Positions 7,219-42,531 of a stretch of 64,000 bases of DNA are shown here, one piece after another; position 1 is the first letter of the stretch, and every line of letters begins with the position of its first letter. A program made the translations under genes and the position numbers. The stretch spans positions 1 to 64,000 of IMG/VR virus record IMGVR_UViG_3300047548_001236, one strand, 5' to 3'. The notes under the pieces were generated by a model, which ran no database searches, was not told the DNA's origin, and worked only from the letters and a program-made list of their open reading frames with translations.

Positions 7219-8047
7219 CTTTCGTTACCGCCGATTGACGCTCTAGGTCAGTGAAGCCCATGGAAGCATATGTTGCAGATGTTTCCATTCCCGATGCATA
7301 AGCCGACTTCATACGAGTCGTCATAGCCGAAGCTGCACGGATCGTGTTTGCTGTTCCGTGTGTATCATACTGCATTGTGTTGTTGACGTTGAACCCAAGC
7401 GCGGAGCCAGCGTGGAACGCATTGATGTTAGCTCCGAGGAATATGAAGCCCCAGTTCTTGGCTTCCGCCTTTTCGACCATCGTTTTGATGTCATCATTAC
7501 GGAAAGTGCGAGATGAATTCTCTTCTCCGTCCGTGAGAACGGTGACGATCACCGATTCACGATCCGCTTTCTTAACCTTTGAAAGTTGCTCGTTGATTTT
7601 CATCATCACACCGCCCATTGCATCAAGCAGATTGGTGCCACCGCGAGGATTGTAGCTGTTGTGATCGAGCGGATTCACGTCTTTGACATTGACATGGTCA
7701 ATCGTGCATTTGACGGATGAACCATCAAACTTATATAGCGAGACAAACGTTTCGATTCCACTCTTTTCAGCGTCGACTTTTTGACCATCGAGGAATTCGT
7801 TGAATCCGGAAATGGTGTTGTCTCGGCAGCTCTGCATTGAGCTCGAGTCATCAAGAACAAAGATGATGTGGGAGGTTTTCTTGCCAGCCTTCTTGGGCTT
7901 GAACGCTTCCCCGAGAGTCGGCTTCGCTTGAACCGTCTGAGGAGCTTGTTGCACAACTGTGTGCGGGAGAATCGTAGTAGTTATATGAGGAGTTTGTACA
8001 ATTGACGGGTTGATCAAATTGTGGTAGGGGTAGTTTATATATGTCAT
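7208..8047 (-). CDS. von Willebrand factor A (MIDAS) domain protein
   Basis: FVLDDSSSM, GGTNLLDA, LTDGEENSS. Confidence 0.88.
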   Translation of the reverse strand: MTYINYPYHNLINPSIVQTPHITTTILPHTVVQQAPQTVQAKPTLGEAFKPKKAGKKTSHIIFVLDDSSSMQSCRDNTISGFNEFLDGQKVDAEKSGIETFVSLYKFDGSSVKCTIDHVNVKDVNPLDHNSYNPRGGTNLLDAMGGVMMKINEQLSKVKKADRESVIVTVLTDGEENSSRTFRNDDIKTMVEKAEAKNWGFIFLGANINAFHAGSALGFNVNNTMQYDTHGTANTIRAASAMTTRMKSAYASGMETSATYASMGFTDLERQSAVTKDDQ

Positions 8048-8244: not shown

Positions 8245-9036
8245 ATGTCTATTTATACACCTTATACCTATCTTATAGGATGGTCTTCAATAAGTAAATA
8301 TTATTATGGCGTCCGTTTTGCGAAAAACTGCCACCCAAGTGATTTGTGGGTGAAGTACTTCACCTCTTCCAAAACCGTAGCTGAATACCGTAAACTTTAC
8401 GGTGAGCCTGACGTGATTGAGGTTCGAAAAACATTCACAGATAAACACTCGGCAATTTTGTGGGAGGAGAGAGTGCTCCGAAAACTAGATATCAAGCACA
8501 ACGAAAAGATGCTTAATGCGAACGTTGCAGGCGCAATCGTGAAGAATCTTGATCACGCAAAAGGAAGACCGAGTAAACTCAGAGGCAGATATTGGACGGA
8601 GGAACAGAAAGCGAAGCTCAGAAAACCAAAATCAGTCCCTAGTCCGTTAAAGGGAAAACAATTGACAGATGAACATAAAGAGAAGCTCCGTGCTGCTAAA
8701 CGCGACTATAAACCGTGGAACGCTGGCAAAACTGGCCTACAGAGTCATTCGAGCGAAACAAAAGAAAAAATGCGGATGGCTAAGATCAAGTCAAAAGTCA
8801 TTATATTTTCAGAATGCCCTTGCTGTAAGGAAATAAAAGTTAAGCCAAATCAAACTTTCTGTAGCAATTCGTGTAGAGCGAAACACAACGCACAAAAATT
8901 ATCAGCTCAGGGAAAATTTGGATTTCAGAACAAGTCTAACCAAGATGCTGCGCAGTTAGCTAGAAGGCCCGTTGGGTTATACGGTGGAGCCCATACCGCA
9001 GACTCAATCAAGCAGCTAGGCGAACCTGTGGCTTGA
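8245..9036 (+). CDS. Homing endonuclease, GIY-YIG-like with NUMOD3 repeats
   Basis: YTYLIGW...YYYGVR, HSSETKEKMR repeats; late promoter TATAAATA at 8174-8181; antisense to its neighbours. Confidence 0.8.
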   Translation: MSIYTPYTYLIGWSSISKYYYGVRFAKNCHPSDLWVKYFTSSKTVAEYRKLYGEPDVIEVRKTFTDKHSAILWEERVLRKLDIKHNEKMLNANVAGAIVKNLDHAKGRPSKLRGRYWTEEQKAKLRKPKSVPSPLKGKQLTDEHKEKLRAAKRDYKPWNAGKTGLQSHSSETKEKMRMAKIKSKVIIFSECPCCKEIKVKPNQTFCSNSCRAKHNAQKLSAQGKFGFQNKSNQDAAQLARRPVGLYGGAHTADSIKQLGEPVA

Positions 9037-9336
9037 AATTATCGTTTGCAATGTTTGTTGCAGTTATTATTGTCTTCGCGGTAACGGCGCTTAGATCCCG
9101 GTAGCTCCATCCTGCCTAGTCCGCCTGTCGATCCTATTTCGAGCCCATCAAAGATACACTTGCTGATATCCTGTTAGATTTCAACTTGACCCACTACAGA
9201 TCAAAGTATCTAACACCGCTTCCGTTATCAGTCCGGTAGGTAGTTAACCTGTTTCCTTTGGCAAGTGTATCTATGGTGGACCCGCTGGGTACCGCCCCCA
9301 GGTCCAGAACGTGTTCAGTGAATATCATCACTACAA
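8962..9336 (-). ncRNA. ssrA: Circularly permuted (two-piece) tmRNA
   Basis: Acceptor piece ends GGGGGCGGTACCCAGCGGGTCCACCA (9274); intervening segment 9147-9273; coding piece starts GGGCTCGAAATAGGATCGAC (9146); tag ANDNFKPQVRLAA* (9008-9049); G3.U70 pair. Confidence 0.93.
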
Positions 9337-9339
9337 TTG

Positions 9340-9370
9340 TATTTATACTAGATCATGCTGAACAAGTCAA
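9340..9370 (-). promoter_or_regulatory. Overlapping sigma70-type (TTGACT-17-TATAAA) and T4 late (TATAAATA) promoter for tmRNA
   Basis: TTGACTTGTTCAGCATGATCTAGTATAAATA. Confidence 0.75.
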
Positions 9371-9500
9371 CCGCGATCGTATCTTCTTTGCTTTTCTTCG
9401 TAGGTGTCGTATCTTTCGGTCTCGCTTCCCATCAACTCCTCCTATGAAAAGAGGGGCTAACCATTGGCCCCTCACGAGTCTATTACGCGACCAGACGTAT

Positions 9501-18569: not shown

Positions 18570-18674
18570 TGGTATCCCAGACAGGATTCGAACCTGCACC
18601 TACGTCGACTGATAACCAGCGGTAGGCCCTAGCTTTTTATGGCCCCGGTGTTTACCCACTTCCACCACTAGGAT
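18570..18674 (-). tRNA. Degenerate Leu-like tRNA with enlarged variable arm
   Basis: Acceptor, D and T arms and CCA intact; anticodon stem poorly paired. Confidence 0.5.
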
Positions 18675-18680
18675 ATTTTT

Positions 18681-18757
18681 TGGAGGTCGACCATGGACTT
18701 GAACCACGACCCCAGCTCTTGCAAGAGCTGTACATTAACCAATTTTGCTAATCGACC
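18681..18757 (-). tRNA. tRNA-Cys-like with 8-nt anticodon loop
   Basis: CAGCT-CTTGCAAG-AGCTG; U73; CCA. Confidence 0.7.
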
Positions 18758-21237: not shown

Positions 21238-21313
21238 TGGCGGCCCTGGTGGGACTCGAACCCACGACCATGAGTTTTAGAGGCTCTAGCTCTACCATCT
21301 GAGCTACAAGGCC
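21238..21313 (-). tRNA. Amber suppressor tRNA (anticodon CUA)
   Basis: Loop CT-CTA-AA, canonical D/T arms, G73, CCA; two mismatches in anticodon stem. Confidence 0.8.
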
Positions 21314-22568: not shown

Positions 22569-23030
22569 CTATTTATTGCAAAGCTCACGAGGCAGCAGGT
22601 CGAATTCAGGAAGATAATCGTTGAAATAACGACGGTAGCTTCCGACGACTGACTTGATCTTACCCTTGACCTTGCGACGCTCTTCAACGTTGCGAATACT
22701 GTTCATCAGGTTGCCGAGCAGATGACGAACCGAAGCAATGTGAGCCTGTTTGTACAGCCTCTCTGCTTCAACCTTGGAGTAACCACGTTCGACAACATAA
22801 TTGACGAAGCAACGATTACCACGTTCTTCATTGCACTTCCGGCACATCACGAACATGTTGTCCGTAGTATCTGGACCACCGTACGACTTTGCTACCATGT
22901 GGTCAACAGTCGCCATGTTGCGTTGCACTTTATCAGGATTTGCTTTCCAGACCAACTGAACGTTGCAGCAAGGGCAACGACGAAGTCCGCTTTCGAAAGC
23001 ATTCTGCAGGGCTGTTTTCTTGAAGCACAT
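22569..23030 (-). CDS. HNH endonuclease
   Basis: CPCC...ATVDHMVAKSYGG...NMFVMCRKCNEERG. Confidence 0.85.
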   Translation of the reverse strand: MCFKKTALQNAFESGLRRCPCCNVQLVWKANPDKVQRNMATVDHMVAKSYGGPDTTDNMFVMCRKCNEERGNRCFVNYVVERGYSKVEAERLYKQAHIASVRHLLGNLMNSIRNVEERRKVKGKIKSVVGSYRRYFNDYLPEFDLLPRELCNK

Positions 23031-23087
23031 TTGAGTTTTTCCTCTCTTGTGCCGTCTATATAGGGGAAGTTGGTTGTACAGGCAACA

Positions 23088-23399
23088 TCAATAATTGTGA
23101 AAAAGATCGTATGTCTTCTCAAAAATATCTGGCTTGCAAGGATAATGCTCACCATTGACACCTCGAATAATATAATCGCCAGGAAGCGCGTTCATCGTAC
23201 CTTCCAGAGTAATTATTTTGAAGATTTTACCGTCGTTCTTCACGTGATCCTGATACTGTTCGAAGGAGTTGAACCACTTGAACCAATCAGGATGCTTACC
23301 CGTGAAGTCGAGTACTTCTCTAAGGTTGTCTCCTGTGTATTGTATCGCTTCGATCACAACAGGTCTTTTAATGTATTTGTTGATCATCACGTTCTCCAT
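23088..23399 (-). CDS. Conserved phage protein (PGDYI-type)
   Basis: KRPVVIEAIQY...TLEG.M...GDYIIRG..GE.YPCKPDIF..TY. Confidence 0.8.
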   Translation of the reverse strand: MENVMINKYIKRPVVIEAIQYTGDNLREVLDFTGKHPDWFKWFNSFEQYQDHVKNDGKIFKIITLEGTMNALPGDYIIRGVNGEHYPCKPDIFEKTYDLFHNY

Positions 23400-24355
23400 T
23401 CTACTTGCAACGGGGAGTACGAGGGGATTTGCACCAGGCCCCTGAACCTTCTCCTCTTTTCAGCTCCTCAGGGAAGGAGCCTACTTCTGCACCTTGCTTA
23501 CTCCGCTCTGGAAGTAGAATATTGTTGCGGGTGAGATTACCCCGTATTGTGAGCGCCTTTCCGATGTACCACATCCCTTGCGAGGAGTGTTGTCGGGTTA
23601 TCCACAAGAGTCTTTCGATCATCTTGTATCGCTCAGTGCTGCCGTTTTTGAGGTCTGGCTGTTGACCTGTCGCATGTTACTACTCGTCCGTCTTTCCTAC
23701 GCCTGCCTTGCGAGCAGCTCAGAGGCGCTAACCTCCTACGTGATCATTCTGAACAACTACTCTAGCCTTGCGAGCCTTCGTAGGCCTGATTATCTTTCGA
23801 CTCAGGCATTAAGCACCTTTCGTAACACACCGGAGCAGACTTTCGCTTTTTGAATCTATGTTGCTTTGAACCAAAATCAAACGCTAATTTAATAGCTGCG
23901 AACCTACTGAGAAGTGCTGCTCCAGTTGCTCCACACCTTGTTAGATGCAGAATACCACACTCCTCCTGTCTTTCTCCTTGCGGGATACTCAACGTCACTT
24001 CACGAATCCGGTGTGACCCTTCCTCGTTGATGATCCTACACCGCCCTTCTACGCGAATAGTCGGACTATGTAGACACCTGTTGGACTTTTCCATTCGTTA
24101 GTTTGGCTGAAAACTGTTTGGGCGCCAACCCTCTTACACCTCACCGATCGGCTCTGGTGCTATCCTTTCGGACAGTCTTCCTAACTTACTGGATACCTCC
24201 TAGCTTCTAAGGCTAGAAGGGACTTGCTTTCGGTTTAATCCGAGTCAAGTCTATCCCAGGCTTGTATGAATGGACCATTTTACTGGCGCAGGTATGTAGG
24301 AATCCCTGCTTTGGGTGTGTTACCACACTTACCCTGACGACGTCATACCGCCATT
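23400..24355 (-). ncRNA. Candidate large structured ncRNA (about 950 nt)
   Basis: No credible ORF, many hairpins, downstream of a promoter and boxA within the tRNA island. Confidence 0.45.
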
Positions 24356-24567
24356 ACACTGTTTATATCTAACACAATGAGCAACTTACTCGTGCACATT
24401 TCAGTCACAACTGCAGGAATCGAACCTGTACTCCTATCTTTTTAATGATAGGTGCGCACCTAGCGCTGTTCAGCCTACTAATGCTCGGTCATCAACCGTC
24501 GGTACGTTAATGTACAGCATCTAGCATCGTGTTAGATAAAAACAGTGTATGTCACTGTTTTCTAAAT

Positions 24568-24578
24568 TGTCAAAGAGC
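24568..24578 (-). promoter_or_regulatory. rrn-type boxA antitermination element
   Basis: GCTCTTTGACA just downstream of a TTGACT-17-TATACA promoter. Confidence 0.65.
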
Positions 24579-24644
24579 GTGAAGACTTTCATCTTCGGTA
24601 GAGATCTGTATAAACTATTCTTTCCAGACAGTCAACAGATTTTA

Positions 24645-24768
24645 ACGGGAACATCTGATTTTTGCCGGCTGCTCTACCACTGAGCTACAAGATCCTTGTG
24701 GGGACCTTGGAGGGATTCGAACCCACGACCCGCTGGTTGGTATATCAATATTTGCTGTATTGTTCCCT
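24645..24768 (-). ncRNA. CAGCAA cassette 5: permuted tRNA-like RNA with G-1:C73-type acceptor
   Basis: T arm, CAAGGTCCCCA-CAA-GGATCTTG, then D arm; GGGAACA/TGTTCCC closing stem. Confidence 0.75.
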
Positions 24769-24938
24769 AATTGGGATTCAAGATGGGAGTCTTTTCCTCC
24801 CTGCCAGCCTGGCATTCGCTTCAATGGGGCTCTCGGTGAGTCACTCCCCTCCACGGGATGGAACAAATTCCATCGCAGCCACCGTCTACAAGCATCTAAC
24901 TACAGGCGTGTCAGTGTAGACGTTCCAACACCCTTAAT

Positions 24939-25016
24939 TGGCTCCCTCTGCTGGACTCGAACCAGCCTCATTCTTGATTAACAGTCAAGCGCCATCACCT
25001 GGACGACTCAGAGGGA
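24939..25016 (-). tRNA. tRNA-Asn(GUU), atypical D arm
   Basis: Loop CTGTTAA, CCA. Confidence 0.8.
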
Positions 25017-25404
25017 ATGAAAGGTTACAGTCGCAAACCCGTTGCCATAGCCATCCAAAGAGGCATCAGCTGAGGAACGAATGTGGTCAGCACACATGCA
25101 ACAAACGTAGAAAGAACCATCGAGCTGACCAGTTCGGTTTTGTCGTTGATTCTGACCAGAGTGGGCAGACCAAGGGAGATTCCAATGTTTTTCATCTGTT
25201 TCACCTTCACTTGAGATTTGCGTTGTAGGCTTTCGAGCCTGCTGCCTTCGCTTTGGTAGTGGCTTCGAACTTGGTCATTCCTTCGCTGATACTCTTTTTG
25301 TATTCAGCGTCGAATGCTTCCTTAGCCGCCAGCATCGCTTTCTCTTCAATGTCTAGTGTCAAAGTTGCCATGACTCAGTTCCTTTCGTTCGTCATGTGAG
25401 TAAC

Positions 25405-27947: not shown

Positions 27948-28078
27948 GTGTATTCTCCGTATGTTTTGTATATGTGCGTATATTTTTGTATGAACAATGT
28001 GTAGGCACGATGTAGTAATGCGTTCACAACACTATTTATACACGGTTACGCATACGATACAGCACCTACGAAGAAAAA

Positions 28079-28177
28079 TATCCTGGTTGGACTCGAACCA
28101 ACGGCCTGCGCTTTATTCCCAGCGTTTGGGTCCTTCACCATGAGGGAGCACTGCTCTACCGACTGAGCTACAGGATG
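28079..28177 (-). ncRNA. tRNA-like RNA with 34-nt anticodon loop, no CCA
   Basis: Canonical D and T arms; two hairpins in the anticodon loop. Confidence 0.6.
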
Positions 28178-41674: not shown

Positions 41675-41800
41675 TGGCGACCCCGGTAGGACTCGAACCT
41701 ACAACCTACTGATTAGATCGTGCCTTAGAAGATTCGCACTTCACTGGGCTTCCATACCCTCAGGCCAAGTCAGTTGCTCTATCCATTGAGCTACGGAGTC
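41675..41800 (-). tRNA. tRNA-Arg(UCU) interrupted by a 50-nt insert in the anticodon
   Basis: Removing 41717-41766 restores a 76-nt cloverleaf with loop CTTCTAA. Confidence 0.85.
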
Positions 41801-42112: not shown

Positions 42113-42211
42113 TGTGCGTGGGAGGAATCGAACCTCTGCCTGGCATCTTGCTGCCTACCCCGTATCCCTACGTCTCGGTCTTCCTGTGCTCCCACTACAC
42201 CATCACGCACA
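42113..42211 (-). ncRNA. tRNA-like RNA with D and T arms, expanded anticodon region, no CCA
   Basis: GTGCGTG/CACGCAC stem extended by a long flanking helix. Confidence 0.55.
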
Positions 42212-42463
42212 TGTAAAAGTAGAATTCTGTTTTCAGCTGCACTTTACAACGGAGCGACCGTTTTAACCTAGCCGTATCGAACGGCGACTCCCTTGCGCAA
42301 AGGTGAGCTCATTCCCCGATCGGAGATAAAGTACATGTGAAAACAGAATTTTCAGTGTTCCAAAGGAACACCTCCAACAAAGGAACTCACGGACACATTC
42401 GTCAGTTTGTTCTTCTGTCTCAGTTTCATGATCGGATTTCTCCTAGAAACATTCGTGCCAAAT

Positions 42464-42474
42464 TGTCAAAGAGC
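42464..42474 (-). promoter_or_regulatory. boxA antitermination element heading the tRNA operon
   Basis: GCTCTTTGACA downstream of a TTGACG...TAATCT promoter. Confidence 0.65.
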
Positions 42475-42531
42475 GTTTCGTTTGTGTCGTTAGATTAGCT
42501 TAGCTTCTTCGTAACGTCAACCCGAAAATTA

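Follow-up and report, generated by a model that had tools for sequence, protein, structure and literature searches.

The window analysed here is a stretch of 64,000 nucleotides, the first 64 kb of a virus record (IMGVR_UViG_3300047548_001236) of 282,855 bp that is complete according to CheckV. It contains 38 tRNA genes and a permuted tmRNA gene, each of them on the minus strand. The topoisomerase II subunits of the phage are T4-type and ~45% identical to those of T4-like phages. Among the tRNA genes lies a long region with a promoter, a boxA and a leader at its upstream end and a small protein gene at its downstream end (Table 1). The segment 24355..23520 (-) is, with a probability of roughly 0.95, a GOLLD RNA gene with a core of 836 nt. 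The tRNA island around it belongs to a T4-like jumbo phage of 283 kb, which probably infects an alphaproteobacterium.

Table 1. Features at and around the GOLLD RNA gene, in the 5' to 3' order of the minus strand
Feature	Position	Strand	Remarks
Putative sigma-70-type promoter	24607..24635	-	-35 TTGACT at 24635..24630, 17-nt spacer, -10 TATACA at 24612..24607
boxA GCTCTTTGACAA	24567..24578	-	Exact match to GYTCTTTRAMAA; predicted Nus-factor loading site of the rRNA-operon type
Hairpin just after boxA	24539..24561	-	AAAACAGUG / CACUGUUUU, loop ACAUA; boxB/boxC-like position
Leader, boxA to GOLLD	24356..24538	-	T-arm-like hairpin GGTTCGATTCC at 24426..24416; conserved with locus L018 only
GOLLD 5' domain	23909..24355	-	Mostly outside the Rfam model; conserved in 10-14 relatives
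Linker	23841..23908	-	68 nt between the 5' and 3' domains; no tRNA
GOLLD 3' domain	23520..23840	-	Universally conserved half; RF02032 match
3' appendage	23397..23521	-	~120 nt; 10-bp closing stem (23521-23512 with 23406-23397), variable interior
Downstream protein gene, phrog_419	23088..23387	-	99 aa; PHROG match 1.6e-33; GGAG 7 nt before the ATG at 23387

The Rfam model RF02032 (GOLLD) matches 23965..23528 (-) over model positions 1-416 of 416 with 194.9 bits and an E value of 2e-53 (cmscan), while the gathering score of the model is 150 bits. There is no second such match in the 283-kb record, and an Rfam scan of the whole window finds GOLLD, the tmRNA and tRNAs. The earlier note, made from the letters of this DNA, had proposed a giant non-coding RNA beside phage tRNA genes, with GOLLD and ROOL as candidates, and had named a cmscan with GOLLD, ROOL, OLE and intron models as the check. 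The full-length match decides for GOLLD, and the other families return nothing. The minus strand that was implied is that of the match. The limits given, 23400-24355, are nearly exact, since 24355 is the first conserved base of GOLLD and 23400 lies only a few bases from the end of the 3' appendage. The covariance-model score, the pairing of the 3' domain, the size and domain layout, the lack of coding and the location in a phage tRNA island all agree with membership in the family. This copy is thus an additional member of a known family, and its identification is routine and obtainable from any Rfam scan.

Dense structure, which the note had seen as many short inverted repeats, is found on the minus strand. 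The segment 24355..23520 (-) folds with a minimum free energy of -268.7 kcal/mol (z = -3.70), and none of 20 shuffled sequences folds as well. The plus strand of the same segment gives a z of only -0.62, so folding better than that of shuffled sequences is confined to the minus strand.

The structure was compared with that of relatives, which are 16 related IMG/VR loci (denoted by L and a number) obtained from two pattern scans of viral contigs and filtered with nhmmer. The first scan gave 63 loci, 12 of which are true GOLLD relatives according to nhmmer; the remainder are likely chance matches and were ignored. Five relatives were added by the second scan, in which L067, L068, L072 and L073 did not match. 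The alignment used for structure, A1, has 15 sequences: the window copy and 14 relatives. Its RNAalifold consensus contains 208 pairs, 128 of them with compensatory changes. As a control for covariation, the 3' partner was slid by 1-3 columns and double changes were recounted.

Both halves of the RNA are supported by covariation. In the 5' domain, 108 consensus pairs are 97.9% canonical, and double changes occur in 60 pairs vs 12-17 in the slid control. The structure of the 5' half is therefore supported though it is not modelled by Rfam. This domain begins with AATGGCGGTATGACGTCGTCA, which resembles the start of the env-38 cryo-EM construct in a by-eye comparison with the printed construct sequence, and it contains a GAAA loop (GUCC-GAAA-GGAU) that is nearly invariant among relatives. 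The 3' domain has 76 pairs, 97.5% of them canonical, with 54 double changes vs 10-18 in the slid control. A covarying helix formed by CUGGAGCAGC (23925..23916) and GUCUGCUCCGG (23840..23830) closes the linker between the domains. Since this helix crosses the first helix of the Rfam model, a pseudoknot is placed at the domain junction. Candidate cage-contact loops are UUAGCG with its central GC, the invariant UCGCAAG on the neighbouring hairpin, and GAAA; the numbering of these loops in the structural paper was mapped from its text alone. In that paper the contacts are made by L21a, which has a GC/CG dinucleotide, the conserved L21b, and the GAAA of L11a (PMC12286853).

The boundaries of the core are given by comparison. 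Conservation of GOLLD starts at AATGGCGG, whose first base is window position 24355, and it stops a few bases past the last hairpin, GGGG-UAAUCUCA-CCC, at ~23520. In two relatives, L070 and L071, GOLLD is followed at once by an intrinsic terminator, exactly at the point equivalent to ~23520, and the 3' edge of GOLLD proper is thereby fixed. These two edges give the core length of 836 nt.

The linker of the window copy has no tRNA by ARAGORN and none by Rfam at E<=1. Of the 14 relatives in A1, 13 carry a tRNA or tRNA-like gene in the linker, the exception being L036. ARAGORN reads these as Ser-UGA, Leu-UAG or an odd anticodon loop, and one of them scores 53.8 bits in Rfam. As the linker here is a bare 68 nt, a covalently tethered tRNA seems not to be essential to the action of the cage.

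Past the 3' edge of the core, the transcript would continue into a stem-closed appendage. The T-loop-like GGTGCAAATCC that the earlier note reported near the 3' end is present at 23435..23425 (-); it lies inside the appendage and outside the conserved GOLLD core, and it is common to only one relative, L009. Folded alone, the appendage has a z of only -1.3, which is not significant, and its support is therefore comparative. Some relatives have an equivalent stem-closed module with different stems (GAUACAC/GUGUAUC or GAUAUG/CAUAUC). The module is missing from L065/L069 and from L027/L032, and L070/L071 have the intrinsic terminator in its place. The 3' appendage is lineage-specific and optional rather than a defining part of GOLLD.

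The downstream gene belongs to phrog_419. A scan of the minus strand for terminator-like sites between GOLLD and this gene found none, and the gene is probably co-transcribed with GOLLD. An HNH endonuclease gene at 22569..23030 (-), possibly a homing element, separates the GOLLD unit from the next tRNA cluster. Many relatives have another conserved RNA just 3' of GOLLD, a hairpin of ~70 nt (GUUGAACAGUUUUCGAG...CCAUUUCCGAGACUGUUCAAC) that is absent from the window. The copy in L065 is at ~7820..7892 (-), and others are in L040, L042, L004, L033, L027, L032, L009 and L066. This hairpin RNA gives no Rfam family at E<=1.

Upstream of GOLLD, a promoter and a boxA are both present, where they had been described from the sequence, and their position is conserved in relatives. 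The promoter aligns with TTGACA-17-TATATT of the relatives. Its -10 hexamer, TATACA, does not have the usual final T, and it was not listed by the promoter scan because the hexamer ends in A. The scan did make a call at 24573..24544, which was rejected, as here the boxA itself had been misread as a -35 element. The -10 is followed by ACGCTCTTTGACAATTT, and the boxA begins ~30 nt past the -10. All 11 loci for which upstream sequence is available have a boxA-like motif 133-335 nt upstream of the start of GOLLD, in each case ~35-40 nt after a -10-like hexamer. The motifs are GCTCTTTGAAAA, GTTCTTTGAAAA, GCTCTTTAAAAA and one-mismatch variants of these. The element thus has the features of an rrn-type boxA: the pattern GYTCTTT(A/G)A.A in an untranslated leader 3' of a promoter, a conserved position, and a sequence of the rRNA-leader type. 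The gammaproteobacterial boxA consensus is GYTCTTTAANA (PMC5725501), and the boxA motif of the 16S-leader type differs from it at one position. At the site of the hairpin that follows boxA, most of the aligned relatives have a shorter one, UAAACA-CUG-UGUUUA. In the remaining leader (24356..24538) no tRNA is called by ARAGORN or Rfam.

A second, near-identical boxA is found in the same phage as an 18-mer at 42480..42463 (-), and its 12-nt core at 42474..42463 is identical. The GOLLD boxA differs from this 18-mer, CGCTCTTTGACAATTTGG, by one base (TTTAG for TTTGG). The segment 42566..42463 (-) consists of a terminator-like hairpin (ACCCAGGAT..ATCCTGGGT followed by Ts), a TTGACG-17-TAATCT promoter and the second boxA. 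This unit heads a large tRNA island of roughly 8 kb; therefore boxA seems to lead both RNA-gene operons of the phage.

The 18-mer CGCTCTTTGACAATTTGG occurs 105 times in species-representative genomes vs roughly 17 expected, a rough estimate. In 14 of the 105 occurrences the 5' end of a 16S rRNA gene lies 160-295 nt downstream; these are found in Alsobacter, Thalassovita, Parvularcula, and MAGs of Caulobacterales and Rhodobacterales. By its occurrence in alphaproteobacterial 16S leaders, the motif is recognised as a true boxA of rRNA leaders. In the roseophage DSS3_MAL1, the same boxA sequence heads a tRNA-GOLLD-tmRNA cluster, ~1.5 kb upstream of GOLLD and before the tRNAs. No boxA with <=1 mismatch was found within ~2 kb upstream of GOLLD in MD18, phiCbK and PG07, and the link between boxA and GOLLD is therefore specific to a clade. 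The rRNA-leader boxA, the alpha-type permuted tmRNA and the likeness to roseophage GOLLDs together point to an alphaproteobacterial host.

Several other RNA genes of the window are unusual. The two-piece permuted tmRNA gene at 8962..9374 (-) is of the alphaproteobacterial type (tmRNA_permuted 90.4 bits, alpha_tmRNA 74 bits), and a tmRNA adjoins GOLLD also in DSS3_MAL1 and in locus L006. A tRNA at 21238..21313 (-), labelled Pyl by ARAGORN, has the anticodon CUA and would read the amber stop, and another at 18681..18757 (-) is called with the four-base anticodon tgca. Three Rfam matches to the 71-position tRNA model are 100-123 nt long (41678..41800, 28078..28177 and 18573..18674, all on the minus strand), and a tRNA-like sequence with a large insert is found at ~42210..42115 (-). 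These may be tRNA genes that contain introns or are otherwise interrupted.

Just upstream of the GOLLD promoter, the sequence at 24786..24702 (-) is weakly tRNA-like (25.6 bits with the Rfam tRNA model, below the cut-off; no ARAGORN call) and is probably a decayed tRNA. Its anticodon loop is CAGCAAA (GCA, Cys), its D loop is short and its variable region has 19 nt. Overlapping it is a tRNA-like module of permuted order, 24767..24647 (-), whose core (24733..24668) has a T arm, an acceptor stem closed by a CCA-containing loop, and a canonical D arm; around the module lies a 7-bp outer stem, GGGAACA/UGUUCCC. The core scores 35.8 bits with the Rfam model of YrlA, a bacterial Y RNA, for which the cut-off is 69. 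As the score is below threshold and the phage has no Rsr/TROVE gene, a Y RNA is not claimed. The YrlA model also gives below-cut-off matches in 11 of 14 control genomes, and another of its matches in this phage runs across the boundary between two neighbouring tRNA genes. The module may represent a Y-RNA-like gene, or else the point at which two decayed copies of one tRNA meet.

Self-assembly of GOLLD into a cage is known only for env-38, a GOLLD RNA of 833 nt (PMC12286853). This RNA forms a closed 14-mer with D7 symmetry, 380 A across, in which the caps consist of 5' domains and the rings of 3' domains, with the linker in the interior (Kretsch et al., Nature 2025, PMC12286853). The 14-mer forms at nanomolar concentration, and GOLLD levels rise during phage lysis (PMC12286853). 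Few other natural RNAs are known to build a cage without protein. Note that the constant company of GOLLD, tRNAs and tmRNA, points to translation during infection.

A possible route of production can be outlined from the order of the elements. Host RNA polymerase would start near 24600 and transcribe the boxA which, by analogy with rRNA operons, would load the NusB/NusE antitermination complex. This complex may keep Rho from the long untranslated transcript and assist its folding during synthesis. Since transcription would continue through the next gene into the tRNAs, GOLLD would be cut out by processing. By homology with env-38, 14 copies may then come together, with no protein involved, as a D7 cage, with the 5' domains as caps, the 3' domains as rings and the linker pointing inward. 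The sequence of the 5' domain is strongly unlike that of env-38, and the 14-mer stoichiometry is therefore an extrapolation for this subfamily.

The proposal for the clade as a whole is that these large aquatic phages make GOLLD in the way that bacteria make rRNA, from a promoter and a host-type boxA recruiting the Nus complex, which would act against Rho and chaperone both folding and cage assembly. The same device would head the tRNA island, and the tethered tRNA would be dispensable cargo. We give this proposal about an even chance. A literature search did not find a link between GOLLD RNA and boxA, the papers with both words being unrelated ones on plants; as far as could be found, boxA-led, rRNA-like expression of GOLLD is unreported. 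Beyond one more member of the family, the locus offers a covariation-backed model for a type of 5' domain that is not modelled by Rfam, and a natural variant without linker tRNA and with an optional 3' appendage. The clade-wide boxA leader is a testable clue to how so long an untranslated RNA is produced.

The alternative that survives best, unlikely though it is, holds that GOLLD is not a cage. It would instead serve a tRNA operon as a structured spacer or a scaffold for processing, comparable to the rRNA of an rrn operon, or act as a decoy for host defences that target RNA. The rrn-like layout fits this idea, as promoter, boxA, large RNA, embedded tRNA (in relatives) and distal tRNAs follow one another. 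In some loci the GOLLD flanks are also complementary in the manner of an rRNA leader-trailer stem, with duplex energies better than those of shuffled sequences in L040/L042 (p<=0.01) and in L065 and L009 (p ~0.04). However, the flanks of the window copy do not pair significantly better than shuffled sequences (p ~0.19), and neither do those of four other loci (L018, L061, L070 and L071). Moreover, the solved structure is a specific closed 14-mer at nanomolar concentration (PMC12286853), and a linker without tRNA counts against a pure scaffold for tRNA delivery.

It is much less probable that this copy is a non-functional remnant of GOLLD in decay, whose missing linker tRNA would be the first sign of erosion. 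The tRNA that 13 of 14 relatives carry is indeed missing here, and decayed tRNA-like pieces lie just upstream. Yet the copy scores higher with the GOLLD model than a relative that has an intact linker tRNA (182.3 bits). Pairing is ~98% canonical in both domains, the invariant loops are present, and the promoter and boxA are intact.

A protein-coding gene with incidental RNA structure has a negligible probability. The longest frames in 23400-24355 are 110, 91, 86, 83 and 73 aa, and a Pfam search of the frames in this interval gave no match at E<=0.1. The 110-aa frame at 24094..23762 starts with ATG and is on the same strand as GOLLD, but in each of the 14 relatives a stop interrupts it within 6 codons. 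The relatives have 2-7 stops in total each and, in most cases, length changes that are not multiples of three. The substitutions, on the other hand, keep base pairs. The claim that the region has no convincing ORF is thus upheld. Equally negligible is a large RNA other than GOLLD (ROOL, OLE, a group I or II intron or an rRNA fragment): ROOL likewise adjoins phage tRNA genes and the earlier note could not assign the family by eye, but a permissive cmscan of 23000-25400 with all 4227 Rfam families finds in the GOLLD interval only GOLLD, with no ROOL, OLE or intron at E<=1.

Among known systems, ROOL is also a large phage-encoded RNA near tRNA islands and an RNA-only cage (PMC12286853), but it is unrelated in sequence and fold and has no Rfam match in the region. 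With the GOLLD family of RF02032 the window copy shares a full-length model match and the location in a phage tRNA island. It shares with env-38 a size of ~830 nt, a variable 5' domain followed by a linker and a conserved 3' domain, and a similar 5' terminus. Candidate counterparts of L11a, L21a and L21b are the GAAA loop and two hairpin loops next to each other, UUAGCG and UCGCAAG, as mapped from the text. Unlike env-38, the window copy has a 5' domain of very dissimilar sequence, no linker tRNA and an extra 3' appendage of ~120 nt. While env-38 lies directly 3' of a tRNA-Met, the window copy has its own promoter and boxA leader.

The GOLLDs of the roseophages DSS3_MAL1 and MD18 and of the Caulobacter phage phiCbK are included in the alignment of Kretsch et al. 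(PMC12286853). These phages are siphoviruses of 149-216 kb with alphaproteobacterial hosts, and their linker tRNA is annotated as Arg or Gly. The 3' domains of MD18 and DSS3_MAL1 are 66-71% identical to that of the window copy (blastn). Save for the linker tRNA, GOLLD is unannotated in the GenBank records of MD18 (MT270409.1, 22339-22806), DSS3_MAL1 (MN602268.1, 7420-7883) and phiCbK (JX100813.1, 102288-102774). Among these three phages, a boxA was found in DSS3_MAL1 only, where it does not directly precede GOLLD.

Bacterial rRNA operons differ from the window locus in that its product is not rRNA and a leader-trailer processing stem is not clearly present. Their leaders nevertheless have the same arrangement, a promoter and a boxA followed by a long structured untranslated RNA with tRNAs, and the boxA itself is as in alphaproteobacterial 16S leaders.
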